NCBI GenBank assembly: GCA_030704615.1
Contig: CM060733.1
Coordinates: 47,988,001 to 48,052,000, forward strand
Direction of reading: 5' to 3'
Length of the DNA stretch: 64,000 bases
DNA from: Takakia lepidozioides
Taxonomy: Eukaryota; Plantae; Bryophyta
Shown here: positions 4,360-29,402 of the stretch, in pieces
Layout: every line of letters begins with the position of its first letter
How positions within the stretch are numbered: position 1 is the stretch's first letter
Position numbers and translations under genes: made by a program
Notes under the pieces: generated by a model
Database searches by the model: none
Told to the model about the DNA's origin: nothing
Seen by the model: only the letters and a program-made list of their open reading frames with translations

Positions 4360-5980
4360 CCAAATATGATCTTGTTCAAATGTTTTCTGGTTTGGGCTCT
4401 TAAGAAGCTAGGCCAGTCCCCCAGACCCGAATCAGACAACCTGAGGAGTCCGATGTTTGTGATGAGTCTTTACAAATCCAGTACCTGTCTGTTGAAATTT
4501 GCTTGCCTGGAAATGGCTCACGTCAAGGGTTCTTAAAAGCCTATGACTTGACAACCTGCACCACTATGTATGTGGATTGTCAATCAGTGGCTCCTTGTGG
4601 CCATGAGTGCGAGTGCCTTTTGTACAGTGTAAAGCACCTGCCCCAAGGGTTGGAATCTGACGGTGGGTGGGAAAATCCTGGAAATGCCTTGTAAAGCAGG
4701 TGCTTTACACTGCTGTGGAACCCAGCTGATATTCTCTTATCATTTGCTGACGTTTCTTTGAAACACTCTTCTGTTCAATCTCTTGCCCAGCCAATAACTG
4801 ATAACCAACTCTTCCTTTGCAAGTCTTGTGCTGTGGAGATCGTTGTCGGAGTTGATGCCCTCAAACTAGCAAAGGAAAATTATCAGCTGCTTGTAAGTCT
4901 GTAAAGCATGTCACCCACATTGTGGGCAAATGTAGCACCTGTAGCGCTGGCTGGTTGATTTAGCCGTTAAGACTCCTGCCACATTGCATGTGCGGTAATA
5001 GGGCTTGTTAACAAACAAGTAGGTACTTCAAAAGCTTGAGGAAATCTGCACTTATGATCATTGAAAGCGTAGAATGACTTGTTATAATTTGGGTGGCCAC
5101 ACAGGGTTGTTAGCAAACTTGTCATGACTTGGTAGCTGGAGGCGACTCTATATACATCTGTTTGTCCATGTCTCATCCTTTCCCTCCTCAGTGCTTCATG
5201 CTTGATTTTACGTGCATATTCATCTGCAAGGAATATCTATGGATGTAAATATTGGACTTTATTCTTTCTAAATACTTATATCATGCCCGTAAAACAACTT
5301 TGTTGATAACTGGATCCTGAGGCGAGCGATGTGAACTGGAGCTCCGCGTGTTGCCGTGTGAGAGTAGAAATGAAATGAAATTAAATGGTGCTTTATAACG
5401 TCCGCGGAATCATACAGCTTATGGGACAAAATGGAAGAAAACATGAGAGGTAACAAAATGAAAGCCAAGAATAAGAACTATTGTTCAAGTGATTGTCTAA
5501 AGGTGAAGGCCTCGTGCAGGTAAGCTGCCAAGCATTTCTGATCCTCATAGTGGAAGACTTCAGCGAGAGATTGGGTTCCACGGTATAAACTGTGGATTCT
5601 CCCATGGATCTCGTAGTATAGAGGGGGATAGAAGATGCAGTGTTCTTCAGTTTCAATTTCCCGGCTGCGGCCTATGCAAGCTTGGACATAGGCGGTCATC
5701 CCGTTGCAGAGCCAACGCGAGAGAGAAGAGCCAACGGTCATCTGTGCTTATCTCTCTCATTGTGATCTATGCTTAGAAGCTTCAACATTCAATCTCAGGC
5801 CATAGATCGGAAGTTGCCATTTTCCTGGGTATATTATCGAGAATGCCGAGTTTTTGCAATTAACACCACCTCCGTCCATCTACCATCTTAGGTCTGAGAT
5901 CGATGTAGCTCATGTTTGGGCGTTCAATGTGCCCCCAGCGTTCAACTCCCGTCACCACCTAGCAGGCTTCAGGTCAATCA
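4360..5980 (-). mobile_element. Highly decayed LINE-like remnants, including the target site of the Gypsy insertion
   Basis: Minus-strand fragment ETEEHCIFYPPLYYEIHGRIHSL (ORF 5478-5741) resembles the E..H.IF.CP.Y.EIR C-terminal motif of LINE ORF2. Many stops. Confidence 0.4.
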
Positions 5981-5984
5981 AAGA

Positions 5985-6070
5985 TGTCGTGCGCATATGT
6001 ATCGTTACACAACTACATCGCTGACCAAACCACACCACACATATATGCACAATAAAGTAGTCTGTCACAA
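5985..6070 (-). repeat. Split direct repeat B2 (86 bp, 3' terminus of the element)
   Basis: Matches 6430-6515 with 4 mismatches. Confidence 0.95.
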
Positions 6071-6427
6071 TGATAAACAAGCTAAAAGGACACACACTCT
6101 CAACACAAGAAATATGAAATCCATCGTTATCACTCTTTAAAAATAGAAGTCGAGCCAGGGGCATCCCAAGCTATGGGGACTCCACCCCACAACAACCTAC
6201 ACTCCTATCATAAGCACACTCAGATCTAAACGCATGAAAGAGCTCGGTCCCGCAGGCTCAACTCGAAAGAGATGAGCCGCGCGACTGCCGCTCTCGTGAA
6301 GATAAGACGGGTCAGGTGTCAAACTAAACTTGACACTTGATTTAACATCTGACCTAAATCCAAGTGTTAAATACAAATAACTAGTTTTATTCTAGCTAGT
6401 TTCACACTGTGCTTATTTAACTTGACA
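6071..6427 (-). repeat. Split direct repeat A2 (357 bp, LTR-like)
   Basis: Matches 17941-18297 with 9 mismatches (8 transitions, ~97.5% identity). Confidence 0.97.
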
Positions 6428-6429
6428 GC

Positions 6430-6515
6430 TGTCGTGCGCATACGTATCGCTACACAACTACATCGCTGTCCAAACCACACCACACATATATGCACAATAA
6501 AGTAGTCTGCCACAA
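6430..6515 (-). repeat. Split direct repeat B1 (86 bp)
   Basis: Copy of 5985-6070, joined to A2 through GACA-GC-TGTC. On the minus strand it is preceded by a short AGGGGG purine run (~6519-6524). Confidence 0.95.
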
Positions 6516-6774: not shown

Positions 6775-9700
6775 CTATCCAATGCAATGTGGACATAACC
6801 AATCCCCATCCGGAACCATCTCAAGAGGTGGAGTCAAGCATCCCATATGCCAACCTCTAGAGCATCGATCACACACCAGCATGGTGGCTGTCACTTTAGC
6901 AGACCCACACAACATGCACCTCAAACCTGCAGATACCACTGCCAGGTTTGGGTCAATCCTGCCATCAACATTCGGAAGGTGACATGACGCACAATTACTC
7001 ACATGGTCCTTCCAAGTTATGTCATCCCGACCCTCCAAGACCAAGACGCCTGAGGGCAAGACCTCTCGAACCCTCAAAATAACACGTCCTGCAGTCACAT
7101 CCAGGGTCTGTAGGAGCAGTCTGCTGCAGATAGACATAGTCACCAGGGTTGAATCTCCGAACCCCAGGACGATAGCCCCCACCACGTATGGTAGCATACC
7201 TCAACGTATCACGGTGTTGTGCAATGACAAGGTTCTCGAAAGCCATGGGCATAACTCTCTTGAACAACTCTGCACGCTGCTCACATGCACGTGCCCACAC
7301 GTCCGGATCGTCAAGGTTAAGAACTGTAGCAGCTTCTCTGCGAATTGATGTAGGCAAATCCGGCTCTCGGTTAAAGAGAAGAAAGTATGGTGAGAAGGAG
7401 GCAAGTGATGCTTGCTTGCTGAACGTGTAGCCCATGGCTAACCAGGGTAACTGAAGGTCCCAATCTCCTAGGTGTCCCTTCTGCAAGCCATACTTGCGTA
7501 AACCCCTCTTTACTGTCTGAACAACTCTCTCTGCCAAGCCATCGGCCTTAGGATGATCCCGAGAAGTGGTGCGGTGGTCTATCAAGGCCTTGTCACACAA
7601 CGCCTGAAACTCCCCCAAGAACTCTCTCCCTTGGTCCGTGATTACCTCAGCTGGAGCACCGAATCGGCTAAGCACACAATCCAAGAATGCATACGCAGCT
7701 CCCTCACTAGCCTTATCAGGCAATGGAACCAATTCAATCCACTTGGAGAAGTGCTCCACCATCACCAACACGTACTTGTTGTGGCGCATGGTCAGTGGCA
7801 ACGGCCCTGCGAAGTCAAGACTCCACCTGTAGCCCAATCCCATGATCGGAAGAGGGTGCAATTGTGGAGTAGGGGCGTTGAATGAAGCACGCACCCTGTC
7901 ACACACCATGCACCTAGCCACAAATTGTTGCACCTCTGTGTGCATACCACGCCACCAATACTGCCCCTGCAGTAGACTATGAGTGCGTCGCACCCCAAAA
8001 TGCCCCAACTCCTCATGGGCATGCCGCACTAACCGTGCCCGCTGGGTTGGGTGAGGCACAATCCTCACTCGACCATCCTCCCACACTCAGAGCAGGTGTG
8101 TCCCCTCCCACTTGAACCTCTTGGCTCGTTGTAGGATCCGATCCCTCTCCTTGGCAGTCACAGTGGCTGCAGTGTCTCCAGTGCGGAGGTAGTTCAACAC
8201 AACTGAATCCTCATGTATATCTTTGGCGCCACCTTACTCATTGCTGGCCTCAGGGTCCTCAGACACTTGATCTACAGTCATCCCTGTTGCAGGTCCAACC
8301 TGGCCTTCCGCTACCAAGATACACAGAAATGCAGATGCATGCCATCCGGGCACCATCTCCTCGTCCGTCTCACCATGCCACCGAGCTCCAGTGTCATCCT
8401 GCTGGCTTGTGCATGGATTGCGACTCAACCCATCTGCATTGCGATTGACCAAACCCGGTCGATGCACCACCTGAAAGTCATACTCTTGAAGGATGAGTAC
8501 CCACCGTGCAAGCTTCTCCGTAAGCTTGTCTGACTCCATCAACCACTTGAGTGGTTGGTGATCCGTGACAAGGGTGAAGAGATTGCCGTATAGATAGCAC
8601 CTGAAGTGTGCCACGGCCCACACTGCAGCTAAGCATTCTCCCTCATATGAGCTATACTTAGACTCTGCAGCATTGTTCGAGCGGCTAGCATAAGCCACTA
8701 CGAACTCTCTTCCCTCATCATCCACCTGTGTGAGCACCGCTCCAAGCCCCAGCATGCTCCAATCTGTATGCAACTGAAAATGACGCCCCCTGATAGGTCG
8801 TCTCAAGATGGGCGCCGAGGTCAACCTCGCCTTGAGCTCTTGAAAAGCTTGTTCTTGCTCATCTTCCCACTGCCACTCCTAGTCCACCTTGGTCAGCTTG
8901 GTTAGAGCCTTTGCAATGGCACTAAATCCCTTAACAAACCGTCTGTAATAGTTTGCTAACCCCATGAAAGCTCGAACTCGGCTCACATCCGTGGGGCGTG
9001 GAACCTGTGCAATGGACTCTACCTTAGTCTGTTGTACCCCCAATCCTCCAGGATATATCATGTGACCCAGATACTCAATCTGGTTGTGGAAAAACTTGCA
9101 CTTTCCCGGATGTAACTTCAATCCGTGCGTCCTCAAGCGCTCAAACACCCCCTAAAGGTGTCTCTCATGCTCCTCCACCGTAGCACTAAAGATGATGATG
9201 TCATCTATGTAGCACCGAGCAAACTCCACCCCTGCTAGAATCCTGTCCATGACTCTTTGAAACTCAGCGGGAGCGTTTTTAAGCCCAAATGGTAAGAACC
9301 GCCACTGGTATAAGCAATCCTTCCCGTGCTCATTGATCCCCCAGAATGCCGTCTTTTGCTTATCCGCCTCCTTGATCGGCAACTGGTGATATCCGGATCA
9401 TAAATCCAACGTGCTAAAGACCTTGGAATGCCCAATGGCATCAAAGATCTCCTCTGGTGTCGGCATGGCATACCTATCGGACTTGGTCTGACGATTTACA
9501 GGCCGGTAATCACCGCACATACATCTCTCCGTCCAATTGCCATAGACATCCTTCTTGGCTGGCATCACTGTGGCTGAAGCATACTCTCCACCAGAGAGCT
9601 CCACCAAACCTGCCTCCCAGAGATCTTGAGTCCTCATCTGAATCAAAGACCTCTCTATGTCACTGTATCTATAGGGTCTCCGAAAGATTGGCGTGTCAGT

Positions 9701-9910
9701 GGCCAACTCAATACGGATCTCTTGACCCTTCAGTGCTCCCAAGTCCTTCAAACTGAAGGCAAAGCAATTCCTGTAAGCCCTCAGGAACCGCCGTATACGT
9801 CGTCTCTCTCCTCCGGTGACAATGGGTCCAATGTCAGGCTCCCAATTGTCCTCCGTAACTGCAACCTTAAGTCCAGTGGGCTTAGAGGTAGAGGACGCGT
9901 CCCGTGGTTG
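6775..9910 (-). pseudogene. Gypsy pol: reverse transcriptase, RNase H, integrase and C-terminal PHD finger (in-frame stops and one frameshift near 7110)
   Basis: RT: RMC-like CMCGDYRPVN, LDL*SGYHQ, PFGLKNAPAEFQRVMD, YIDDIIIFS. RNase H: TDWS..GLGAVL, YEGECLA, TDHQPL. Integrase: H-H-C-C zinc finger plus SLDFAGP/TDQGREF/AERVVQT (DDE). PHD: CMLC..CDRC....H..C..WLCPHC. ORFs from 9751 down to 8086 share one frame. Confidence 0.95.
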
Positions 9911-12900
9911 CTATGCTGCAACCTCTTGAGCAGTACTTCCTTCCTGCTCAGTCAATGACAAGGCCTCATCCTGCCCCATCATCTCATCATTGAGAACCTC
10001 CTCATCCCGAGAAGAATCCCCAACCTTATCCATCACAGCTGCCTTGGCTGCCAACTCCCTCTGAACCTCGAGTACCTCCCACGTGTGCCATGGATGTCTA
10101 CACCCCGTGGTCATCACCGGCTCGCCCCCACTCGCTGCCTGTACCGTCTCGGTAGGCAGAGAGACTGTCAAGGGAAGTGCACTCCGCACTCTACGTTGCT
10201 CAGCCATAGCCAAGCTGATAATCCAGGTCAAGCAATTGAGATCCATTGCTTGCCCCAACACCTGACGACGTGATGCCTCAGAAAGAGAAGGCACCGTCGT
10301 GGTCCCAGTGGAAAATCCCATAGCCCGTTCTCGCTCGTCGGCATTAGGCTCCACTAACTGTTGCAACTGAGCATCCCACAGGAGGCCAGGTCCACCATCC
10401 CGAAAAGCATAGGATCCTGGGAAGCTGAGCAGTGTAGGTAATGCTGCTCGTGGTTGACCCACCCTATTGACCACTGCCAAAGGCGAACGGTCATCGTGTC
10501 TCACACGTTGAGACTGCCTCCGTGTGTCCAAAATGCTGTCCACTATGAGGTGTGTTGGCCGCTGCACCCCATCAAATGCACGCTTGAGCAGTGCGGGTGG
10601 CATCAAGTTAGTCCACCATAGCCGTGGACGATGAGCCCGTGATCCCACTGCAGCTGCATCCAACAGCACTGCTGACCCAAGCCACGACCGGACTTGATGC
10701 ACACTGGCCATCACCCTGGCCCGAGAATCGCCCATCAGTGGCACATTCTCCAAGATGTATGCTGGCGATACAGCTTGATGAAGCTGCAAGTGGCGCAAAA
10801 TCCGCACCATCTCCCAAAACAGACCCGTCCTCGAGTCTCGCAATCCATTGCCATGCCCCGCTGATGAATGCCCTTGGCAGGGCCAACCTGCCACTACCAG
10901 ATCAATGGAGCCCACCTGCTCCAAATCCGGCGCCCCCAGCAACGAAATGTCTGCTGGCAAGGCTTGTTGGTATCCACGAACTGCAGACACTGGCAACAAA
11001 GCAGGGTACTGCTGTACCAACTGAGCAACATGACGCAGTGAGACGCGTCGTGCAGTTTCATCCCTCTCCACATACAGGTAACGCCTTACCCGCACACCTG
11101 CCTGTAGCACAGCAGCCAATCCGGTGCTGATCCCGCCAAACAAGTCCAGAAGGCAAATGCCTTCATCCGGATACTGCCACACAATAGGTTTGGTATCCAA
11201 TGGTGACAATTGAGGTGGTCCTGGTGCAATACCCGCACTCCCCTCCTCTCCTGACGGTACAAAAGCCTCTACCCAGGCTTGTTGCACCCGTCGATCAGCA
11301 ACCTGCTGCAAATCCTTGCTCGTACCCCACAATGGAGTGTGAGCAACCATGGCAGGCAACTCCGCCATACCATGCATGTCATCCTGCTCTGCTGGAGGTG
11401 GCACATCTTCTACATGGGCATTGCCTTCCAGCAACTCTCCAGGCCAACTAACTGCAGCTGTAAAGGCGGCTAGTGTTGGCATCTTGCCCCGCTGGGCAGC
11501 CGCTATATCCCCAATGAATGTCACAAGGAGCTGTGCACGGCGACCATCGCCTGACTGCCATCCAGGCCTGTAGGATGCTGACTCCTCCCAAAAGTCCAGG
11601 GTGAAGCCCATGGGGTATAACACTGCCCCACCAACAAGGACATCGTAAGAGACCGCGTCTGTCACAATGGCCTTGGCTCGCATTACTGAGCCATCGATAT
11701 GATGATCCGGCTGCAGTCTAATGGCCAATGTCTGCTCTGATCCTCCCAGAGATGTCTGTATCTGGAAAGGACAAGGCTCCATATCCGCCTCCATGAGGCC
11801 CAAACCTGCAATAGCAGCTCTGCCCAACATAAGTGGCTGAGCTCCCGAGTCCAACAAGACCCGCAGTGGCCGGTACTTCTTGCCTGCCGGTCCACTCAAA
11901 GTGAAAATGTCTCCTTGGTTGTCTAACATGACAACTCCAGGTGTCACCATGGCGCGCTCAAAGGCTGGCCTAGCTGGCAGCTCCGTCAACCTGGCAACTG
12001 CAGCTTGCCAGGGCGCAGCCGTGGCAGTCTTGACCCTCAAATCCGAGGATCCCTCTGCCACTACACCTTCCACTAACTCCGCAGAAGATGAAGTGACCTC
12101 CCCACTCTCACAGAGTGTTGCTGCTAGTCTGAACACTGCAGCTGGCCTTACCCCCGGCGTCACAATCATGGTTGCCGAGAACAGTGGGGCTTGACACACA
12201 GAGGTGGCTGGCCCCAATAACACACCGGTAGCAGGTGTCAGGGCTGCACGTGTAGCTCTCCCCAATGGCATAGTAACCTCCGCCTCGGTAACAGTCGGGC
12301 GAGAACTAGGTGCCATGGTTGGCGTCGACACAGTCTCTGCCAATGTGAATGACTGAGGAAGCCTCGCCTGACGGCTTGCCTCCCCACGCTGTGGATCCAA
12401 TTCCACCTCTGCACCTCGTGGCTCAGGAACTCGTGCTGCTCCTCGAGTCACGGCTGCAGCAGACTCCACCTGCTCTAGTGGTAGTGCTGCTCCGCACATG
12501 AATCCCATGCCTCCCATATCTCCTCCCTCAGGAGCAGGAGGTGGACCATCACGCCTGGGAGCCGGTACCGCTTGAGCTATAGCCATGGCAGCAAGCCTCT
12601 GCTCTAGCTGCTGAAGCCGATTGGCCATGCCTTGGTCAACACCCTGACCTTCGCATCCTTGGCCATGTTGAGCTTGCCCTTGGCCTGCACCTCGTGCCCG
12701 ACCACCTCGTCCTCTTTGGGCTGGTCTACCTCGCCCCCGGCCACCATTGTTCCCTTGGAACTGGCCTGGGCGCAACTCAGGATGCAAATCATAACACTGG
12801 GCATCTCCATGCCCATACTTGCCACAATGCCCACACTGCAACTGTGCAGGCTGTGCTTGTGCCGGCATTTTGCCATTCTCTGGCAATCTCTCTTGACATG

Positions 12901-12972
12901 GGGTCCTCCACATGTCCAACATATCACCCCTGGTTGTTGTTGGCCTGCAAAAGACGCCACGGGCCTCTGCAC
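9911..12972 (-). CDS. Gag zinc knuckles, aspartic protease and C5 cytosine DNA methyltransferase region of the polyprotein (frameshift near 12880)
   Basis: Zinc knuckles CWTCGGPHVKRDC (ORF 12604-12972) and CGHCGKYGHGDAQC. Protease LLDSGA (~11845) and YDVLVG. MTase motifs at ~10210-11160: DLFGGI, YVERD, GWPCQGHS, ILENV, AHRPRLWW, ERERAMGF, LGQAM. Confidence 0.93.
10210..11160 (-). other. DNMT3-like C5 cytosine methyltransferase catalytic domain within the retrotransposon polyprotein
   Basis: Canonical motifs I-X in unpermuted order, with the catalytic Pro-Cys (GWPCQ, ~10875) and ENV intact. Confidence 0.93.
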
Positions 12973-13326
12973 CTGAGGTCCCCTGTAAGCTCCATGGAAC
13001 TTGGGCTGGGCAACCTTGCCCCCCTAACCACGCTGTTCTGGGCAGTCCCTTGTGTCTGTAGGCTGACAGCTGTGCCCCGTGCAGGCATGTCAAAAATTCT
13101 CCTTTCTTTTCACTCTATGTCTCAGATCTCCAGTCAGTGGAAAATGTGCAGCAAAGATATGTCATACCGAGTATCTTAAGACAGATTGTTACCAAAGCAT
13201 CTATTTGATACCAGTGTTTGAAGCCTATGGAACAAAATAGAAAGAGGTACGGTATCAAGTAGTCATCCTTGTTCATCCAAGGCTGTGCAGAATCTTGTAG
13301 TATATTTTGGTCATACTTCAGCTCCC

Positions 13327-14322
13327 CTATCTAGGGTAAATAGAATCTCTGTTGTTGCCAAATCCAATTGTAACAACTCGCTCCTCCACCATGTTGAGCT
13401 CAATCCGCTCAGCCAGCAGAAACACATCTGCTAATGTGGGTTGGGCTGCTTGTAACAGGGTTGCATCCCGCACCCTTCTCATGAGCTCCTTGTCCAAAAT
13501 TCCATACCAGAACTGGATTGTCTGAGCTTCAGTAACCCCTTGGGTCACACTTATCAAGCGCCTCATACGAGTGTAGGCCTCTCGCAAGCTCTCACTGGGT
13601 TTGCGCTGAAAGTCTTGCAAACTTCGCAGCTTCTCTGTCCGTACACCTTGGTAGTTCCTCCGCAACTCCTGGAAGAACTCCACCACCGGGTTGAATCTAG
13701 GCATATGTGTTGTAGTCGTGGCAGGAGGAGTAGTAGCACCTTTTGAACTGGTACCACCTGCAGAAGTACCGCCATTACTTGTTCCACTACTAGTGCTGGT
13801 AGTGGGAGATATTGGTACTGATGCAGCTACTGGTCGCGTCGTGCCTCGAGTAATGGAGACGTAGTCAGGTGACCAATACATCCTCCACTCCTCAATCTCT
13901 GCTTCATGTCCTCGCCTGAACTCGTGGTAATCGTTCATAGGCGGACCTTCCAAATGCTGGAACAGTCCCTTCCACGCCATGAATGGGGTGAATAGCTGTG
14001 GATTGCGCATCTGCTGCAAATCACACCAGCTGTCGAACTCCTGGATAAAGTCATCCAACTCGATTGTGCCCACAGCTCCAGAGTACCTACGAGGCCCCTT
14101 GGTAGCTCCATACATCTCCTCCATGTCGTCCCACAACAATGGCGAATGAAACTGCACACCTGTTGATGAAGCCTCCGAGTCTGTGTCTGACTCTGTACTA
14201 GTTGAGGGTGGAGGTGAAGGTGGCCTGAAACGAACACCTCGTCTGGTGAACCCACTCTCATTGCTACTGCCTGTAGCCGTACTCCCCTTAGAACCCCTGG
14301 GTAACTCCGTGATGACACTCAC
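13327..14322 (-). CDS. Gag capsid-like ORF of the Gypsy element
   Basis: 331-aa ORF upstream of the zinc knuckles. FQELRRNYQG..EKLRSLQDFQRKPSESLREAYTRMRRL resembles the retrotransposon Gag major homology region. Confidence 0.85.
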   Translation of the reverse strand: MSVITELPRGSKGSTATGSSNESGFTRRGVRFRPPSPPPSTSTESDTDSEASSTGVQFHSPLLWDDMEEMYGATKGPRRYSGAVGTIELDDFIQEFDSWCDLQQMRNPQLFTPFMAWKGLFQHLEGPPMNDYHEFRRGHEAEIEEWRMYWSPDYVSITRGTTRPVAASVPISPTTSTSSGTSNGGTSAGGTSSKGATTPPATTTTHMPRFNPVVEFFQELRRNYQGVRTEKLRSLQDFQRKPSESLREAYTRMRRLISVTQGVTEAQTIQFWYGILDKELMRRVRDATLLQAAQPTLADVFLLAERIELNMVEERVVTIGFGNNRDSIYPR

Positions 14323-14860
14323 AATGTGTACCTCCCCTACGTGACATTATAAGGCTCTATTACTAATTTTAATAGTGACACGGGTAGGCACCTGTTGCAT
14401 TTTAAGGATCATATCCCAATGGCTCAGGGCACCTGCACCTGCATCCACCGCAAGAACTCCTATGGTTGGCTGATCATCAACCCAGCCTCACCATAGAAGA
14501 AACACTGGTGGTCTTGCTGGTCATCACTCCAGCCTCACCACCGACAGCATACTCTAGGATTGACCGGTGATCAAATCCGGCCTAATCCCTATGAAAGCAA
14601 GCGCCCACACAAAACCAACATGGCGCACAGTCAAGCATGCAGGTGTTGGGGGGGATCCAAACACAAGAAATCAAAACATCAACACCCCCACACCAAAATC
14701 CAGCTGCAATGCTGATCCTGCAGAATAGCCCAGCCCAAAACCCCGGACTGACTGGCCTCCACCAAGAGAGGCTTTGGCAACTACAAGTACAAGGTAATGA
14801 AAATAGTACAGAGATGGAGGGGAAGAATAGAAGCCCGACCAAACAAGATCTAATCCTGAT

Positions 14861-15610
14861 CTATGCTATCAACTGCCAGACTTCTCTCAAAGTGCCTCGC
14901 TCTGCATGATGGTAAGGTGTAGGAGGTATATCTATGTCCAGAAACCTGTCACTAACCTTGTCCCAAGCTACAGTAGCTCGCTCTAACCAACCCTCCTCCT
15001 CTTTCTGCCAGGTAGAGACAAAGCAATACTCCCCTATCTCCCGCTCACTGAACACTAAGGAAAACAAAGGTAGGGTCTGATAGTCTCTCAACTCGAAAGC
15101 TTTGAGATGGTTGCGGGTGTCCTCATTGCGAATGAGTGCATCTCCTTCACGCACAACGAACATGTCATTGCTAATGAACCCCCGCTCGTGGTTGCTCTGT
15201 GCAGAGCGTATCCGGCTGCAACCATGTCTGATTGCACAAACTTTTGTAGCTCCTGCTCCTCTGCTCCAGTACACCATGGCCTTGTGGCTGAACACCTTGG
15301 TCCCCGGGGCTGTCTTTGGCTGTGTTCCAAGCCTAGCTTTCACCCACTTTGATATTTCACCTACAGCTGCAGAACTGCTGGCTCCAACAGAGTTCTGACT
15401 GTCCAAGGCGATATTGAGGCCCTCAACGCCAACTACAGCAGTTTATTGTCCACTACTAATGTCTGACTCCCTGTATGCAATCAACTCGTCCAACTGTTCT
15501 CCACTCAAATCAGTCTGAGTTCCTTGGGAAATATAAATCTTGTCCCCTTTGGTGCACAGGCTAAGAGAAGAGACCTGCCCTTCAATCACGTCCTCATTTC
15601 CCCCAGCCAT
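14861..15610 (-). pseudogene. Extra ORF of unknown function upstream of gag (~249 codons, one internal TAA)
   Basis: ATG at 15610 (MAGGNEDVIEG...) is in frame with ORF 14861-15406, with a single TAA at 15443-15445. Confidence 0.55.
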
Positions 15611-17940
15611 ACAAGGAGTACATCCCCAGATTTATCTCTCATGTAGACCAGAACATGTTCTAGAAACAGGATTGTGGATCTTTCATGGCACACTCACACT
15701 CTAAAAATTCCATAGATTTTTAGTAGAGTCCCAAAAACAAAAACCAGGTCTAGATAGGTAGATTTTCCCTTTCTGCAGCTATCCCCTCAAAAACTGAGTC
15801 AAACGGAGCTCATTTGACGAAGATATGACCAACCAGGCTCTTTAAACATAACACCTTTTTCTTTTCTTTCTTTTTAAAAAAAAAAAGACAAAACAAATAC
15901 AAAGAAAACTCTTTTTTTTTTCTTTTTTTTTTAAAATACTTATCTTGGTTCCCTGTTCCCTGGTTATCTACGGGTTCCCGAGGCCGTTCCCCTCCAGGTC
16001 TATGCAAAATCAAGCTGGTGCCGACAATGCTCACGTACTGAGGCACTCAGGATTGAAGACCCAAAGTGCTTCTATCTCGTCTCACCAACAGCCGACGCTA
16101 CTGCCTGCAGCAGCTCTCACACCAGCAGGGCTTGTACCTGCAGGCCCTTGTCTCAAGCGAGCCTCCAGCACACTGAATAGCGATATCGCCAGCTCCCACT
16201 CAGGCTCTAAAAAAGGTTAGGGGGGCCCTCCCCACATATGGAAATCTCCAATTCACAGATGGGGCCCCAGCTTTGGGTGGGATACCCTGCATTAGAACAA
16301 CATGCATATGACTTGGCGCTTCCCTATATCACCGATCCAAGAGATGCGACATGATTTGAAGGCTTTTCCTCACGTTCCCCCAACTCTATTTTCCATCAGT
16401 AAGGCCTGACGGGAAGGAGGGCCAACTCTTTCCACTTACACAGACATGCCAAAGGAGCAGGCCCTGACCAGCAAAAGGTTCGCCCACATACATATCCCCC
16501 TGTGTAATGTTCTCTACTCGCCGATCACCGCGTACACCAAACACGGTAGTAAGACTTGGCCAGGACTACTCAAGGTTGAACTGTTGCATCCCGCCAGAGA
16601 TGGTATCGCCTTGCTCAAAGGAAACCGCACCTTCGTTCTAGAGATGGCCTCTGGAATTCTTCATGGTCTACAAAGCAAATCCGCATACGAAGTTCTGCTT
16701 CATTTACCAGGCAACCGACGACTCCAAGCAGAGAATGCTTAGCACTAGGGGTGCGGGTCAATCATACACTCATCAAATCACAGCTCCACATTCGTAAAAC
16801 CAGTATGACTGACATCTCTGCAACACCTCAGGAGATTGTTGCTGAGAGAGACGCCGTCACATTGGTAGCAAAAAAAAAAACCTCAACTCACTGCACTCTC
16901 AAGCAACAACAGTAAACGCACTTCAAGGCATTTCTGGCAAAGACAACATCGTTCAAATTCACTTCGGCTGAGAAGACAAAGCACATCGGCTTGGCCCTCA
17001 TCACCTGCAGGAACCCGAGTATCTACACACAATGGTGCAATCGGCCATCCATTCTAGTCATTGACAAGTACATCCAGTTCGAGTTGCATATCAACAGCCT
17101 GAACGGGGCTGTTCCCCCCTGTTGCAGAGATACTCGAGCGACCGAGAGTCGCCAACATCAACCAGGCCCTTGCCGAAACTGTACAATCAATCAGCTTCAA
17201 GACGACCTCAAACCAAAAACAAGGCCACGACTCACTAATGGCAGAAATCAACAAGCGACTAGCCGCTCAGGCCATCTCCATCAAGACAAATATCAAAGAG
17301 GATTTAGTGGCCATGGAAAATAAGGTCTCAATTAGCATGGCTGCCCGGCAGGAAGGACATCACACTGACCTCCTGTCGCTCTAGTATTCCATCACCAAAA
17401 ATCTAGGTGCTAACTTAGCACTCTTCTACGAGCATGCAAATAAGGTACTTGAAAAGCTACCCCCCCCCCCCATGCAGGCTCAATCAACCCACAGGGCAAG
17501 GCGCGGCCATTATCGCAGAGAATGCACACCCAAAGGCTCACCAGCCGCTGGCTCTACTTGAACTCCCATTCACTGCTGCCCCATTCGCTGCTCTCATTCA
17601 CCGCAGCGGGCTCTATGGGGGCCCTGACATCACACCACCACCAGCTGCCATCGGCATATCCTCCACAGGCGGCGGCGCCCCTACAGTGGAAACACACCTC
17701 ACCAATGCCAACAGGAATCTGGACATACCACCATTACTCTCTCTTCTACCTATACCCCCTGAGTCCCACCATTGCGACTGAGGATGTGAAAAACTCCAGC
17801 TAGCGCCATTCTATGCTCATTACTTGAGCTGTGTACAAGACCATGACCATCTATATTATAATAGTGTTTTTAAATAAAAAAACAAAAACATCATATCTAG
17901 CTTAGCACTAGAAAACTAGATAGAGGTCATCTCTCTCGAG

Positions 17941-18297
17941 TGATAAACAAGCTAAAAGGACACACACTCTCAACACAAGAAATATGAAATCCATCGCTAT
18001 CACTCTTTAAAAATAGAAGTCGAGCCAGGGGCACCCCAAGCTATGGGGACTCCACCCCACAACAACCTATACTCCCATCATAAGCACACTCAGATCTAAA
18101 CGCATGAAGGAGCTCGGTCGCGCAGGCTCAACTCGAAAGAGATGAGCCGCGCGACTGCCGCTCTCGTGAAGATAAGACGGGTCAGGTGTCAAACTAAACT
18201 TGACACCTGATTTAACACCTGACCTAAATCCAAGTGTTAAATACAAATAACTAGCTTTATTCTAGCTAGTTTCACACTGTGCTTATTTAACTTGACA
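17941..18297 (-). repeat. Split direct repeat A1 (357 bp, 5' terminus of the element)
   Basis: Matches 6071-6427. It is not adjoined by a B copy, and no canonical tRNA primer-binding site lies directly next to it. Confidence 0.97.
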
Positions 18298-19098
18298 AAG
18301 ATCCTAAAAATGTTACTCGATCCTTAGGGCACCCTTGGACTGGCCTGGGCTTAGTGGCGTCCATCATCCCACACCTATTCAGACGGTCCTTCATAAGCTG
18401 TTTCATAAGAACAACAGCAAAACACTACACCGATTTTGGTACCAGAAGTGCCAGTTGCAAGTTCTTGGAGATGCAAACACTAGAGCTCTCTCAGGACACA
18501 AGTTGCGGTCATTCTTGGAGCAGTGCGGAACCACAATGTCAATCACACTGTTGGATAGTGAAGCTACAGAGCCAGATCCGCGTATATGAGGCTCTGTCTG
18601 ATGTTTCCCACGAATCCGAGCATATGAGGTACATGGCTGATGTATGCACTAGTTAGCAATCACTTTACACCCCACAGGTTGATTCTAGTGGTGGTCTGGT
18701 ATCTGGGTTTCGCCAACCCGGGCATCAACCCGGGTCTCTCCTAACCTAACCTACTGTTCTCTGTTCCCGTAAGCATTTGTACTACCCTGCCAGTTCTCGA
18801 GTTCCCTGGCGGTCCCCCAAACCCTAACAGGCGGTGGTTAGGGTTCTCCTTTCCCCGGCCCCTACCAGAGCTCGACTCGTTGTTGCAGGTCTTTTCGGGT
18901 ATCATGTTAAGATGCACATATAGACATTATGGATGCAGGTTTCATGTGTTTATGAGCACCTCTTTATGATCTTCATTTGCGAGACACTATGGATGCAATT
19001 GATTCAGTGTATCCTATGAGATGAGCAGGTTTAGGAAATTCCAAAAACGCCTTGATGTGAAATGCATCGCAATTCACTTGATCACCCCCTAAAAGTGC

Positions 19099-20154
19099 GC
19101 AATTCAATTGAACTAACCCTAATTTGCAGTTCAATTGAATTGTCGGCACACGATTCAATTGAATTGTCAACTCGCAATTCAATTGAATTGCTGATTACAA
19201 TTCAATTGAATTGCTGACTACAATTCAATTGAATTGTAATCTATAATTTTTAACTTATTTCTGTATATAATATATATATGTATATATTTAAATTATACAT
19301 ATATACATACACAGGTATAAGCTAAAAATACATGTTGCCTGTCTATTCTTGTTGTCCGTCTGTCAATCCTTTGCCCGTGGTAAGGCTTGAGCCCAAGATA
19401 AGCCTAAGGGAGAGTGAGAGAGGGAGAGAGAGAGAGGGGAAGTCACGAAGCGTTTGTAAAAGCGGGATTGTCTCTCTTTGTGGATGTTGGTGCCAATATA
19501 TGTACCAAACATGATACCAATGTAAGAGTATCAACGTGTAAGAGTTTGATATATTAAACTTATATAGAACACACATCCCAACTTCAACATAATACCTTTG
19601 TAAGGGTATCCAAATTTTTGATAATTCTCAAGATGAACATACTTTCTGTTTTCTTTGTCGTGGGCCAGATACTAGTGTTAGGGGACTACATGGTGATGCA
19701 GGGGAAGCCTTTCATCAATTGTCAGGTTTGATTTTGTCTGTTTTTTTCGGAGCCAACCATATTTCTTTTGCCAGTGAATCACATGAAGCTGTTGATCTGT
19801 CTCCGTTTCTGGCTCTCCCTTTCTCGCTGAGGCTGAGGCTGGTTTCACAACTCCATAATTTCCTCAAGGGCACAAGAAAGAGGGCCAGCAAGAATAGACG
19901 GGCAACATGTATTTTTAGCTTATACTCTTATATGTGTATAAATATAATTTGAATATATACATGTACATATATATTATATATTATATACAGAAATAAGTTA
20001 AAAAAATTATAGATTACAATTCAATTGAATTGTAGTCAGCAATTCAATTGAATTGCGAGTTGACAATTCAATTGAATTGCCAATTCGCAATTCAATTGAA
20101 TCGTGTGCCGACAATTCAATTGAATTGCAAATTAGGGTTAGTCAATTGAATTGC
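19099..20154. repeat. Long inverted repeat (~260-bp arms) built from palindromic CAATTCAATTGAATTG units; foldback/MITE-like
   Basis: 19099-19357 is approximately the reverse complement of 19883-20154, enclosing ~525 bp of unrelated sequence. Confidence 0.85.
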
Positions 20155-21353: not shown

Positions 21354-21944
21354 ATGGATAAAAACTACTCCACTTCCAATGGCTCAGGGGACTCAATCTT
21401 GGGCAAAGGTCCAACCCAATCGGCCGATGTACACTCCTCCAGTGAAGAGGACGTTGTGTGGGAGGATTCCATTCCACAGGAGGTGACCGACTGGCCAGTT
21501 CTAGTCTTGGACAAAGAGAAGCTCTGATCGCAGGAGCTAAAGCTCACTCAAAGGGGGATTTTGATCTACTTCCCGGGGAAAACCAGACCCAGGCTGTGGG
21601 TACGTCGCTGGATTGTTAAACATCTTGGAGCGGATGGAGGTCTTGCCCACCACTACAGCCTCTCCATGGGCAAGGGCTTCTACCTGGCCTTGTTCAGTTC
21701 CCCTGAAGAAGCAGAGACAGCTCTGAAATTTAACACTCAGCTGTCAGCTATCAAGGTCTTCCTCTTCCCTTGGACCCACGATTGGGGTCACAGGAAAGGC
21801 GTGATGTGGAAGCCAAGGGTTATTGTGATACCCTTCCTTCCGGCTACTTATCTGTCCTCTCTCCCTGAAATAGGCGCCAGCTTCGGCACCTTCATGGGCT
21901 CACTGAATGTTTTTGAGCCGATGCTTGACAACATAAGGAGTGTG
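21354..21944 (+). pseudogene. L1 ORF1 N-terminal part (DUF4283-like), one in-frame stop
   Basis: ORFs 21195-21527 and 21561 onward share a frame. The protein continues in the inverted segment from 25575 on the minus strand. Confidence 0.8.
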
Positions 21945-24900
21945 GATAATGTCTTGCCCCCAAGCGCTACAGTGGGAAGAGGCAGCCTGACTGTGCATCG
22001 CCGAGAGGATCCCCATGGATTTCCGCCAGTTAATGTTCAAACCAGAACCCAAGCAAAAAATGTGCAAGGCCTGTAGCGCACGGTCAATATTCTGTCTGGT
22101 TGAATTGTCCAGCAGTAAAGTGGTGTCATCAGCATACATGGACAGTTTTACCATTTCAGGCACAAATGTGGGCAAGTGAAGGCCCACAATGTCCTGCCTG
22201 GCTTCAAACAGGTGCCCAAGAGAGTCAGCTGCAATGAGAAAAAGGAAAGGTGCCAAGGGGCAACCCTGTCTTACTGACTTTGAAATAGGGACAGATTGGG
22301 AGATGACCCCCCCTTTGGCGATAATCTTATAAGTAGAGTTGAGCAAGGTAATAGGGCGGTAGTTAGCAACCTTATCCCTCTCCCTTTTTTTGTAGATGAG
22401 AGTGATAAGACCCTCCGAAATCTGAGAGGGCATCAACTGTTTGAGGAGGATGTCATTGGCCATATTGAGAAAGTCCTCACCCAAAGTGCCCCATAAGGCT
22501 TTGAACAATTCAGCAGGCAGACCATCCGGGCCCGGACTTTTGAGAGAAGGCAGGGCCTCCACCGCTTTCCCGAGTTCAGACACAGTAAATGGTTCTGCCA
22601 GATTGGCTTTGTCCTCAACAGACAGGGAACAAGTAATGTTCCTAAGGAGAGCGTTTCTGGCCTCCACCACCTCGGGAGTGTGATCTGTTTTTTGGAAGAG
22701 CTGCCTAAAGAAGTCAGCTGCAATGCCAGCCATCTTCTTTGGGACAGTACTTGGGAGACCAGAGCTGTCAGACAGAGAGGGGATCAAAGTAGAAGCATGA
22801 CATTGGGCCGCTTTGACGAAAAAATATCTAGACATTTTTTCCCCCTTAAGCGACCAATGGACCCCCGCCTTGACTCTAATGAATTGCTCCCTAGAATGCA
22901 GAAGTAAGGATAGGTTTTTCTTAGCAGTCTTGTAAGAGATCAGGGTTTGTGGGTCGTTCTTTCCCACTTGCATCTCAAACTGACAAACATGTAGGCGTTT
23001 GGTTAACGCTTTCTCTTTTCTGGAGGACTCTTCCGCTATTTTCCTAGACAGTTGCTGACAGTTACTTCTAAGACTCTGAAGAAAGAGGAGGGTGGGGGAG
23101 GAAAAGGGGAGGTCAGCAGAGGACCAAACCCTTTGAAGCTGGAGGATAACCTCCGGGTCTTTGAGAAGGAGGGGGTTTAACTTAAAGAAACCTCTACCCC
23201 TTACCCTAGCCCCTGGGGTGTGGAGAGAAAGGTGAACAGTAGAGTGGTCAAAGCCCGGAGCTATGGGGGCAATTGGAGATCTGACAGTCCAGTTTAACAA
23301 ATGCTCGGAGCAGTAAAATCTATCTAAGCGAGCAAGAGAGAGGTTAGGAGGCACCCTATTGTTAGACCAAGTGAACTTGTTCACCATCAGCCGGGGGGGA
23401 AGCATCCAACAGACCAACCGCCAAGCAAAGGGAATCCCAAGAATCTCTTTCAGCCACCGAGAGACCATGGACATTACCACCAAAACGGTCATTGTCAAAT
23501 TCCACCATATTAAAATCCCCGCCCATAATCCAGTGTTGAATGCCTAGACGTTGAAGCATTCTCAACCTTACCAGGGACCACAAGTCGATTTGCTCCACTT
23601 CACTGTTTGGAGCATACACATTCAGCACCCCAACATTCTCTATAGACTGACCCAGGTTCATGACAACAAGCTGAATCCTCCCCTAGACCCATATTTCATT
23701 AGATATAACATTAGGGCCCAACGAAGGAGAGATCAAGATCGCAGTCCCTCCTTTGGAATCAATGATCGTGGGGTTCCAGAAAGCAGAGTTGGAAGGCCAA
23801 ATAGAAGCACCCAGAGAAGCAATTTTTGCAGGGTCCAGTTTGTGCTCTTGAAGAAAAATTAGAGAGGATTTATTGATGAAGAGAGAGGCCCGGCGTCTGA
23901 TTCTTGCCCTTTTTAGGGCAGAGTAATCAGGCCCAATGCCTCGTATATTCCAAGAAGTTAGGGATAAATTCATGGAACAGAGGGGTTAAGGCCCGCGGTG
24001 ACAACGCGATTTGATGGCCAGGTAGGTAAAAAGCGGAATTTTGTCCTTTTGTCAGAAGGCTGCAACATATAGATCCATTGAAAGCCAGCAGGTGGGGGGA
24101 GGGCAGCTTGTAGGTTCCAGATAAAGACCTTCCTGGACTTCTTTCTCTTGCTAATGCACCCCATTTCCAAAAATTGGTTTCTGCTGTCTGTCATAACTGA
24201 TAGTCCTAACAATTGGTGATCCCAAGAAAGCAATGAAGAGAGAAAGTCAAGTGACAAGCGGGAGAACAGGGGCATCAGAGAGCCACACCAAGCAGGCTGG
24301 ATTCTAAGACCCGGAGGAAGGTGCTCAATTACCAAGGTCCAACCACGTTTCTTGTTGGCAACATCAAGAACAAAGAAAAAGAGGGGGGAGTAAGCATGAG
24401 GAATGATGCTTACCGCCGGGGGCGAGTCCACCGTCTCCTCGGGCTGCTTCATTTCTTCAAAACTGTTGTGTGCCCCGTTGGAGGAGTGCAACATGTCTGC
24501 CTCATTATATAGGACGATTTCTCTGTTATTTGGCTGGACTTCAGTGGGGATGTGGTGATCTTCCTGTGGTGCTTGAACTGCTGGACCCTTGAGCTTCTGC
24601 AGACCGGTGAGTTCAGTCACCATGCGTTGCCCTTCCTCCAGAATTAAGGAGCTGCGAGCCCAGGTGTTGGGATCATTTACCCTGCAGGACAGGCCAAATC
24701 CATCTGCCCACAAACCCTTGAGAGGTTTGACCGATAGCTGCAGGTCAATGGCATGAAAGATGGGAAGCACATGCACGACTGCCAGATTGACCAGAGCAGG
24801 ATTGTTCTCCAACATGAATTTGAGCCGTGAGGCGCAAAGTAATTTCTTTTTCATTCCCAACGCCCAAATCTTTGGCCATCGATTCTGTGACCCAGGCAGA

Positions 24901-27675: not shown

Positions 27676-29402
27676 TTCTGCAGCGGTTTGGGACCCGGGT
27701 ACCTCGATGGAGAAAGACTCTCATTCGGAACTTTATCTGGGGTGCAACCACTCAATCCCCCGTGAGGCGCGCTCTTCTCTCGTGGGAACAACTGTGTCAG
27801 CCAAAAAAAAAAGGAGGCCTTGGTATTTTGGATCCGGCAACTCAAATCAAGGCCCTTCTGGCTAAATGGATTCCTAGAGCCATTGTTCATCGTCACAACC
27901 CGTGGAGTAAGTTAATCCAGCCCTATCTGATGGCGGCCAAACCCTCCTCATCCCACCTGTGGGCTAATTCCCTTCGATGGATTGTTCAGGGGAAAAATAC
28001 TAAAGTGAACTTGGGATCTCGCCCATGGCAATCCATTTGGGCGGCTTGGCAGTCTATCAGGACTAAGCTTGTCCAAAGAAGACCAGTCTGTTATGCAGAA
28101 GCCTACCGTCAGCCCCTTTTTGGGAACAGCTTAATCAACTTAGAAAGGTTGTCCCTTCAAAAACCAGGGTGGGGTTTCTGGGAGCACTATGGCCTTACTC
28201 ATCTAGGCAGCATCTGGGAGCAGGGCAGCCTTCTTCCTGCAGCTACTGTGTCTCAAATTGTGGGCAGCAGACGTGCCATGGCCTAGTCCTCCCTTACTGC
28301 AGAAATCCCAGATTTCTTCACTTCACTGCTGAGCAACGGTGACAATGTGGAGACACCGCCAATCTGGACTGCTGCATCAAGCAATGGTGGTAACAAGGTC
28401 CTTTTGGTTCTCTCCCTCAATGGAAATATGGCTTCTGGGATTGCTTTTGTGGCAGATTATGAGGGCAACTTGCGTGTCGCGGGTTGTTTGGATGTGCAGA
28501 AGCAGCTCCTCTTCCGTATTAGAGTGCTGGATGAGAAGGGGACTGCAAACCCAACCCCGCCGCCAGGGCTGGAAATGCAATGGGCCTTGCACTCTACCTT
28601 CACTTGGTTTCTTAAGTTCCCCATGGCTGCTTTACAGTTTGACCCAGGGGAGTGGAGTTGGACAGATGACCACCACTCCCCTTTCTTTGCGTACACAGTT
28701 AAGATGGGTTATTCTCTGTTGAGGACTCCCACCTCTTTCTTATCTAGGTGGTCTGAAAAGTGGAGCCACTTGAACCTGTCAGCAGCCAACTGGGACTCGG
28801 TATGGAAAGATATCTGGAAGAAATATAGGGCAACTAAAATCTCAGCTTTCTTGTGGAAATTGGCTCATAGGATCTTACCAGTCAATGTCAAGACCTTGTT
28901 CAACAACTCCTCTTGCGGTTTATGCATGACTCAGCCGGAGCTATTATGTGTTTCCACTCTAGTTGGGATACCTTCCCATCCCCCATATCTTCTTCTCTGC
29001 TGCTCTTGAATTTCCAGCCTTCTTTTAGTCCTACTTCATGCCCAGTTTGGGCCAGTCTGAGGGCTCTAACCCTGTGGAACCTGTGGAAGGCTAGGTGTTC
29101 TCAGATGTATGAGGGAAGACCCCCTAGGGGCAGGTCTATTATGTTTAACATATATCAAGACCTGCTTACCGAGGGGAGGAAGGCTTGGGGAACCTTGTGT
29201 GCAGCTGTTTCCAGGTCTTCGGAAGAACGTGGCAGGCAGCTCATCAATAACTTTCACCAGCCCTGGGGGAAAAATGATACTCTCGGAACCATGCTTCCCA
29301 ACTTGTGATTCTATTGGAAAGTCACCACTCCAGCTCATTGGACTTTCCCTGGTGAAGGAGACGATGCGGATTTTAATTGGAGACACAAGAAGCCTCGTGT
29401 GA
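27676..29402 (+). pseudogene. L1 ORF2 C-terminal part (post-RT, zf-RVT-like)
   Basis: IRNFIWG..LLSWEQLCQPKKKGGLGILDP, KISAFLWKLAHRILPVN, CGLC, LWNLWKARC, with frameshifts and stops. Confidence 0.88.

Follow-up and report, generated by a model that had tools for sequence, protein, structure and literature searches.

We analyzed a stretch of 64,000 nucleotides (nt) from Takakia lepidozioides (assembly GCA_030704615.1, contig CM060733.1, positions 47,988,001 to 48,052,000 of the forward strand), here called the window, with positions counted from its first letter. The minus strand of the window contains, from 18297 to 5985, a 12,313-bp element that is very probably an inserted, now-dead copy of a very high-copy bryophyte family of Ty3/Gypsy-type retrotransposons. 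In a single reading frame, the family encodes, in this order, Gag, a CCHC knuckle, an aspartic protease, a DNMT3-like C5 cytosine methyltransferase, a TAG stop, reverse transcriptase, RNase H, a DDE integrase and a PHD finger. The features of the window copy, all on the minus strand, are given below in the 5' to 3' direction of the element (ORF, open reading frame; aa, amino acids).

18298..18301, minus: target-site duplication TCTT, 5' copy; the four bases recur past the 3' end, and the fifth base is ambiguous
17941..18297, minus: terminal repeat A1, 357 nt, starts with TG, 97.5% identical to A2 (9/357 differences)
14323..17940, minus: region from A1 to gag, without conserved coding sequence; contains a 181-aa ORF (15406-14861) without family match
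13327..14322, minus: gag ORF, 331 aa; weak match to PF03732 Retrotrans_gag (E 8e-4), 56-59% identity to gag of Marchantia and Calypogeia
13092..13355, minus: insertion of ~264 nt, private to the window copy, which parts gag from the pol frame
12794..12835, minus: CCHC zinc knuckle (nucleocapsid), C-x2-C-x4-H-x4-C, in the 1060-aa ORF
11414..11911, minus: retroviral-type aspartic protease, with D-S-G (LLDSGAQ) at 11825-11857
10214..11176, minus: DNMT3-like C5 cytosine methyltransferase, uninterrupted, motifs I-X in canonical order; residues 640-960 of the 1060-aa ORF (13093-9911)
9905..9913, minus: conserved in-frame stop with its context, TAG-CAA-CCA; the TAG, at 9913-9911, lies 100 codons past the methyltransferase domain
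8879..9910, minus: reverse transcriptase (PF00078, E 3.6e-15 on the middle piece)
8234..8824, minus: RNase H (PF17917, E 6.5e-36; PF17919, E 2e-25), ending in the stop 8236-8234
7022..8089, minus: DDE integrase, H2C2 zinc finger (PF17921, E 1.1e-16) and rve core (PF00665, E 4.3e-14)
6784..6918, minus: PHD finger at the integrase C-terminus (PF00628, E 6.2e-11), here in another frame, but in frame with the integrase in Marchantia copy L001
6519..6525, minus: polypurine tract AGGGGGG, directly upstream of B1; same tract at the same place in Marchantia L001
6430..6516, minus: repeat B1, 87 nt, TG...CA, 95.4% identical to B2 (4/87 differences)
6424..6433, minus: 10-nt palindrome GACAGCTGTC at the B1-GC-A2 junction; identical junction in Marchantia L001
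6071..6427, minus: repeat A2, 357 nt
5985..6071, minus: repeat B2, 87 nt, the 3' end of the element, ends with CA
5981..5984, minus: target-site duplication TCTT, 3' copy

The broken parts of the window copy were searched piece by piece. RVT_1, RT_RNaseH, Integrase_H2C2 and rve, the Gypsy set, were found in this order and in one frame, with the protease detected below threshold only. The TCTT duplication, the TG...CA ends and the polypurine tract indicate a real insertion in the window genome. An earlier note, made from the letters of this stretch, had spoken of a land-plant Gypsy retrotransposon. The Pol domains, the target duplication and the bryophyte genes in the neighborhood bear this out, but the copy itself is dead.

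The same note had reported an intact C5 methyltransferase at 10210-11160 on the basis of a series of motifs. All of them were located, in a domain with slightly wider borders (10214-11176, minus strand) that is recognized by Pfam as PF00145 DNA_methylase in a search with the 1060-aa ORF (E 1.7e-12, 47.8 bits, cut-off 22). The motifs, again all on the minus strand, are as follows.

11120-11146, minus: motif I, DLFGGISTG
11057-11074, minus: YVERDE
10865-10888, minus: GWPCQGHS, with the catalytic Cys
10742-10756, minus: ILENV
10604-10636, minus: AHRPRLWWTNL
10313-10336, minus: ERERAMGF
10238-10270, minus: RRQVLGQAMDL

In an alignment of 41 family domains (residues given as those of the window sequence, whose row also shows the catalytic motifs), E143 and N144 (of ENV) and E283 (of ERE) were invariant. 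F13 and G15 (motif I), C100 and Q101 (PCQ), and H182, R183 and R185 (HR.R) were conserved to at least 90%.

Comparisons with proteins of known structure consistently ranked DNMT3 first. A phmmer search of the PDB gave DNMT3A (4e-11), DNMT3B (4.5e-8) and DNMT3C (2e-7) ahead of DRM (6e-5) and HhaI (2e-4). The profile of the 41 family members sharpened this order (DNMT3A 5e-23, DNMT3C 8e-21, DNMT3B 3e-20, DRM 1.6e-13, HhaI 5e-8, DNMT2 2e-5), and neither DNMT1 nor CMT (chromomethylase) was present among its PDB matches. The motif order is colinear with DNMT3A, and DRM chains could be aligned via their C-terminal half only, i.e., in permuted fashion. An AlphaFold model of the domain (mean pLDDT 94.3) was compared with the PDB using Foldseek, and the best 50 matches were all DNMT3A, DNMT3B or DNMT3C (TM score 0.73 normalized to the query, up to 0.83 to the target). 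A look-up in the ESM Atlas returned generic 'C-5 methylase' clusters only. The DNMT3 assignment is based on this ranking by PDB sequence, profile and fold. Together, the data support the view of the earlier note that the domain is DNMT3-like and unpermuted, unlike DRM, and the motifs predict that it should be catalytically competent. PF00145 was the sole Pfam family in the 1060-aa ORF, and no PWWP or ADD domain was found there, so that the domain is DNMT3-like, but the protein is no canonical host DNMT3.

The methyltransferase is a fixed part of a large family. A word-index search identified relatives in Calypogeia fissa and Marchantia polymorpha (72-76% identity), in Sphagnum (~57%), and in Closterium and Chromochloris (35-39%). 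Further relatives, from Marchantia paleacea, Riccia sorocarpa and two additional Sphagnum species, came from a profile search. An exhaustive search of 50%-identity clusters returned 4574 clusters at E<=1e-3 and 256 at E<=1e-30. The best 150 of these cluster representatives were nearly all long multi-domain polyproteins of element type, with no host enzymes among them. Relatives carry the protease family PF13650. In a FastTree phylogeny of 203 domains, the window methyltransferase fell into a clade of 25 tips (support 99) together with all named liverwort and Sphagnum rows, and the algal rows were placed outside. The nearest named relatives come from liverwort and Sphagnum assemblies, where they lie on chromosomes or scaffolds of 9-49 Mb. 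As for the window genome, ~49,000 contigs from one DNA run of the same organism fall on 5.6 kb of the element, which shows that the family is very abundant there.

The arrangement gag, protease, methyltransferase, reverse transcriptase, RNase H, integrase and PHD finger is colinear in four Marchantia polymorpha copies (L001 and L004-L006), in a Calypogeia fissa copy (L002) and in a Logan contig (L003) with a methyltransferase 92.5% identical to that of the window. The domain thus occupies the same place in other genomic copies, with the catalytic Cys and Glu retained, as the earlier note had expected of a true family as opposed to a one-off capture. Its second expectation, a dN/dS ratio below 1, also held. 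For the methyltransferase, dN/dS (YN00; saturated pairs with dS > 1 excluded from conclusions) was 0.155-0.19 in four pairs with dS of 0.05-0.29 (window-L003, L001-L004, L001-L006 and L004-L006). In unsaturated pairs, the values were 0.10-0.20 for reverse transcriptase, 0.13 for integrase and ~0.2 for RNase H. Selection thus maintains the domain no less strongly than the indispensable enzymes of the element. Copy L001 (Marchantia polymorpha AP019869.1, 10225128-10244964) has an uninterrupted frame from gag to PHD finger but for the TAG, and its terminal repeats are 99-100% identical, so that it looks like a very young insertion. One protein of 455 aa (P0260) has 52% identity to the window methyltransferase and groups with eukaryotic element sequences; its label assigns it to a 'Candidatus Obscuribacterales' metagenome-assembled genome. 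Probably, it derives from a eukaryotic contig that was binned into a bacterial genome.

The TAG that follows the methyltransferase is equally characteristic of the family. At the same place, TAG-CAA is found in all four Marchantia copies (L001 and L004-L006) and in Calypogeia L002. It also occurs in L007, a relative from a metagenome with just 54% identity in the methyltransferase, where TAG-CAA-CCA is followed by the next gene in the same frame. The wider context is TAG-CAA-CCA in the window, L004-L006 and L007, TAG-CAA-TCA in L002 and TAG-CAA-CAA in L001, where this TAG is the sole stop between gag and PHD finger. Leaky UAG stops of the tobacco mosaic virus type follow the read-through rule UAG-CAR-YYA, and the CAA-CCA of the window fits CAR-YYA. 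To judge from this context, the TAG may occasionally be read through. The earlier note had put the methyltransferase in the same frame as, and between, protease and reverse transcriptase. Frame and position are correct, but with the conserved stop intervening, the methyltransferase would be part of the abundant Gag-protease product and not of the rarer reverse transcriptase-integrase extension.

The termini of the element are unusual. The element shows features that are canonical for long terminal repeat (LTR) elements, namely the target duplication, TG...CA ends and a polypurine tract. However, its repeats are not two equal LTRs but unequal: the 5' end has A alone, and the 3' end has B-A-B. 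This split arrangement, A1...B1-A2-B2, is shared by the window copy and Marchantia L001 and L006. In L001, the termini lie at 4826-5122 and 15134-15657 of the copy, with a 4-bp target duplication, GGTT, at both ends. The palindrome GACAGCTGTC at the B1/A2 boundary looks like the right and left ends of the element joined head to tail, as in a circle-type junction. After A1, no tRNA-type primer site was recognized in the window element. The region between A1 and gag matched no Pfam family, and a search for an extra gene in these 3.6 kb (by tblastx and blastn, with the Marchantia and Calypogeia copies for comparison) revealed conservation of only ~130 nt beside gag. This spacer measures 2.7 kb in Marchantia, and its window counterpart may hold nested or lineage-specific sequence.

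The nearest PDB relatives of the PHD finger are CHD4, PHF12, PHD1 of KDM5A/B, ATXR5, PHF21A, UHRF1 and AIRE. We take the PHD fingers of these proteins to be readers of unmodified H3K4 or H3R2. This suggests that the finger on the integrase would target chromatin without H3K4 methylation, in parallel to the ADD domain of animal DNMT3.

The window copy is a relic, because it can yield no product beyond the TAG. In addition to the TAG, the frame is interrupted by five in-frame stops at 9400-9398, 9154-9152 and 8881-8879 (all in the reverse transcriptase), at 8236-8234 (RNase H) and at 8089-8087 (before the integrase). The three stops in the reverse transcriptase are private to the window copy, since nearly all other copies in DNA runs read another letter there, and the RNase H stop is not present in Marchantia L001. 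A frameshift near 7100-7197 separates the integrase core from the PHD finger. The insertion between gag and pol is missing in almost all other copies, as seen from public-run contigs placed on the element. Contigs from three runs jump from 13091 to 13355 or 13358, and the summed depth drops from ~5e5 to 129 in that bin. In Marchantia L001, gag and pol form a single frame. Among 25 well-supported private differences in the interval 8800-14400 of the window, 18 are C-to-T or G-to-A changes (CG 4, CHG 7, CHH 7). They fit the signature that cytosine deamination would leave in methylated DNA, a signature that does not identify the methylating agent. The observed/expected ratio of CpG is 0.52 in the element versus 0.45 in the rest of the window.

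Outside the element, the window contains the following features.

1398-2870, plus: F-box ORF with Kelch motif; best named relatives in the moss Ceratodon (38%)
31984-32850, plus: F-box ORF
36085-38469, plus: P-type PPR (pentatricopeptide repeat) gene split among three overlapping ORFs, a sign of frameshifts or of a pseudogene

There are also remains resembling long interspersed nuclear elements (LINEs), namely an RVT_1 ORF at 21900-23498 (minus strand) and a weak zf-RVT ORF at 28347-29009 (plus strand). Just beyond the 5' end of the element, short arrays (19127-19197 and 20016-20134) consist of a 24-nt unit built on the nearly palindromic CAATTCAATTGAATTG.

Other explanations for the locus fared poorly. 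The window itself shows a single copy, as one would expect if one element had captured a host DNMT3 fragment in a one-off event or if the assembly were chimeric, but elements of Marchantia, Calypogeia and Sphagnum and many metagenome contigs carry the same domain in the same position. The colinear relatives, the 256 clusters and the contig depth of the same-organism run refute such an event, and we regard its probability as negligible. Algal or other contamination of a land-plant assembly might be suspected as well, given that the element kind was first described from an alga and that remoter relatives occur in Closterium and Chromochloris. Yet the element, flanked by its target duplication, shares the window with F-box/Kelch genes that have Ceratodon relatives and with the PPR gene, its nearest named relatives reside in chromosome-scale liverwort and Sphagnum assemblies, and the methyltransferase clade holds bryophyte names only. 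Contamination, which the earlier note had named as a potential pitfall, is thus extremely unlikely and was rejected, and the data support a land plant of bryophyte grade as the host. The nearest named relatives of the element and the bryophyte-type host genes would point to a liverwort as the likeliest kind. A further thought is that the host might have co-opted the uninterrupted 1060-aa ORF (knuckle, protease and methyltransferase) of the otherwise broken copy as a gene. Gag (331 codons) and the 1060-codon ORF are free of stops, and all five extra stops fall into reverse transcriptase, RNase H and integrase, a distribution with a chance of ~0.01, for stops placed at random over ~2350 codons, in a calculation that was made post hoc. 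However, the 1060-aa ORF is cut off from gag, neither a start nor a promoter of its own is evident, and the terminal repeats are still 97.5% alike, which leaves little time for co-option. The dead copies L002, L003 and L006 carry stops within the methyltransferase, so that the pattern is not recurrent. For this last reason, the absence of stops from gag and the 1060-aa ORF in the window copy is probably due to chance, and a co-opted host gene is very unlikely.

With the element identified as a dead member of a bryophyte Gypsy family, the role of the methyltransferase in intact members can be considered. The identities and order of the domains, the intact catalytic motifs, the conservation of the stop, the purifying selection, and the target duplication left by an integrase-type insertion are direct observations. 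From these we infer read-through, packaging, catalytic activity, substrate and benefit to the element, in the following way. Translation would mostly end at the conserved TAG and yield a Gag-protease-methyltransferase, and occasional read-through at TAG-CAA-CCA would add reverse transcriptase, RNase H, integrase and PHD finger. Fused to Gag, the methyltransferase would enter the particle at Gag stoichiometry. In the particle or the pre-integration complex, it could then use S-adenosylmethionine (SAM) to methylate cytosines of the new double-stranded cDNA or of the fresh insertion, and the PHD finger on the integrase might steer insertion toward chromatin without H3K4 methylation. The new copy would arrive pre-marked as silent DNA, which may reduce harm to the host or hide the cDNA from host surveillance. 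That the methyltransferase is made with Gag, packaged and directed at new cDNA or fresh insertions seems to us quite possible, if somewhat short of an even chance. The earlier note had likewise proposed packaging and methylation of the cDNA or new insertion. The overall account, i.e., the element identity and the family-level mechanism taken together, is in our judgment likely to be the best explanation of the data.

The methyltransferase may also serve the element in a different manner, by acting in trans on host chromatin or silencing loci, by methylating RNA, or as a non-catalytic, nucleic acid-binding part of the Gag-protease product. Located before the stop, and hence in an abundant Gag-linked protein, the domain would be suited to a structural or RNA-binding role as well. 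For KnitGypsy-Dnmt3, a Gypsy element of the charophyte alga Klebsormidium nitens described by de Mendoza et al. (2018, Nat Commun 9:1341; PMC5890265), yeast tests of the methyltransferase domain showed no DNA methylation, and RNA methylation and other roles were raised by the authors themselves (PMC5890265). On the other hand, more than 40 diverged members retain motifs I, IV, VI, VIII, IX and X for SAM binding and catalysis, which argues for catalysis. The nearest enzymes, DNMT3A, DNMT3B and DNMT3C, act on DNA, and the domain is far from DNMT2 (5e-23 versus 2e-5). DNMT2 is an RNA methylating enzyme. On balance, we consider roles of this other kind somewhat less likely than methylation of the element's own cDNA or insertion.

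Several observations weigh against cDNA methylation by a packaged enzyme, or against parts of the account on which it builds. The protease of the window copy remained below the Pfam cut-offs, with three aspartyl-protease families matching the same 80 residues at E 0.009-0.03. The TAG-CAA-CAA of L001 departs from CAR-YYA and is thus a partial fit only. Support for transcription is weak, as the two runs designated 'RNA?' carry guessed labels and were available as contigs only. One of them contains a 2.2-kb contig that spans reverse transcriptase, stop and the end of the methyltransferase with ~98.5% identity, which does not by itself establish expression. No Klebsormidium-labeled protein appeared among the matches of the word-index searches or in the cluster look-up. 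Lastly, the negative yeast result for the Klebsormidium domain counts against methylating activity, although its authors regarded it as inconclusive, because human DNMT3B failed in the assay, too (PMC5890265). Going beyond the window, Gypsy-DNMT3-PHD elements might represent an old green-plant lineage, possibly still active in some hosts, that persists in bryophytes. The methyltransferase, made in Gag amounts ahead of a leaky stop, would methylate the cDNA of its own element, and copies would arrive pre-silenced in H3K4-unmethylated chromatin, a self-limiting 'stealth' strategy. This broader scenario is doubtful and offered as a speculation. If it were true, transposons would encode some of the capacity for de novo methylation in liverwort genomes.

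The window element is of the same kind as KnitGypsy-Dnmt3, with which it was compared by the published description only. Both combine Gypsy Pol domains with an intronless, unpermuted DNMT3-like domain in the Pol frame that has conserved catalytic residues (PMC5890265). Both also join the Gypsy domain set to DIRS-like split direct repeats (PMC5890265). This shared A1...B1-A2-B2 oddity is the strongest link available, because no Klebsormidium sequence was obtained. Ka/Ks among KnitGypsy-Dnmt3 copies is below 0.2, as is dN/dS in the bryophyte family (PMC5890265). There are differences as well. The window element resides in an embryophyte (a bryophyte) rather than in a charophyte alga, and its copy number is very high, whereas few copies in K. 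nitens were stressed in the paper (PMC5890265). A PHD finger on the integrase and a conserved stop after the methyltransferase are not mentioned for KnitGypsy-Dnmt3 in the accessible parts of the paper's text and supplements (PMC5890265).

The earlier note had known of no described family of this type in embryophytes. We found no report on Gypsy-DNMT3 elements in liverworts, Marchantia, Sphagnum or embryophytes in general in a literature search that left subscription journals outside its scope, but the kind itself had been published as KnitGypsy-Dnmt3. The 2018 paper was the sole description of Gypsy elements with DNMT3 in the literature covered, and later papers cite it as 'streptophytes (Gypsy-DNMT3)'. 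The embryophytes of the 2018 survey included Physcomitrella, Selaginella and angiosperms, with no liverwort or Sphagnum (PMC5890265). What is new is therefore the host range, with relatives in assemblies of Marchantia, Riccia, Calypogeia and Sphagnum. Why a retrotransposon carries the transposon-silencing enzyme of its host has been an open question since 2018, when the only charophyte example showed no activity in yeast and came from an alga with few genetic tools. Conserved elements under selection in liverworts and peat mosses bring the question into Marchantia polymorpha, with its transformation, host methyltransferase knock-outs and published methylomes. The value lies at the family level, in a transposon-borne DNMT3 of land plants and an apparently young, uninterrupted Marchantia polymorpha copy; the window relic adds nothing functional. 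In practical terms, Sphagnum and Marchantia records named 'DNA (cytosine-5-)-methyltransferase' are transposon products, and they inflate the counts of host DNMT genes.

Some other systems share individual traits with the window element. SymbioDIRS-Dnmt3 and SymbioLINE-Dnmt of Symbiodinium are likewise retrotransposons with a C5 DNA methyltransferase, and SymbioDIRS-Dnmt3, which has a DNMT3-like domain in Pol, conferred de novo CG methylation in yeast (PMC5890265). However, they belong to other classes, with tyrosine recombinase or LINE organization, and, in the authors' view, acquired the domain independently. The window element differs from them in its DDE integrase and its target duplication. 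DIRS/PAT-like elements in general possess a tyrosine recombinase and make no target duplication, so that the rve integrase and the TCTT duplication rule out this class. The catalytic domain of animal DNMT3A, DNMT3B and DNMT3C is the best match in sequence and fold, with colinear motifs I-X and a short target-recognition region in common. Identity is only ~20%, though, and the methyltransferase protein lacks PWWP and ADD domains; the sole histone-reading module of the element is the PHD finger on the integrase. Plant DRM (DRM2 and tobacco DRM) belongs to the same DNMT3-related clade and was the second-best group in the PDB searches. In DRM, motifs VI-X precede motifs I-V, but the element is unpermuted, with its N-terminal motifs aligning to the C-terminal half of DRM, and this DNMT3A-colinear order rules out DRM identity.

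The remaining parallels concern the integrase and the stop. Chromoviruses are Ty3/Gypsy elements with a chromodomain on the integrase, which presumably chooses insertion sites. The window element, too, has a chromatin reader at the C-terminus of a Gypsy integrase, but this reader is a PHD finger instead of a chromodomain, and it is accompanied by a chromatin 'writer'. An in-frame UAG between an abundant upstream product and the polymerase is found in tobacco mosaic virus and in the gag-pol of murine leukaemia virus, as it is here. Unlike in these viruses with their leaky stops, protease and methyltransferase precede the stop in the window element, where read-through is suggested by the stop context.

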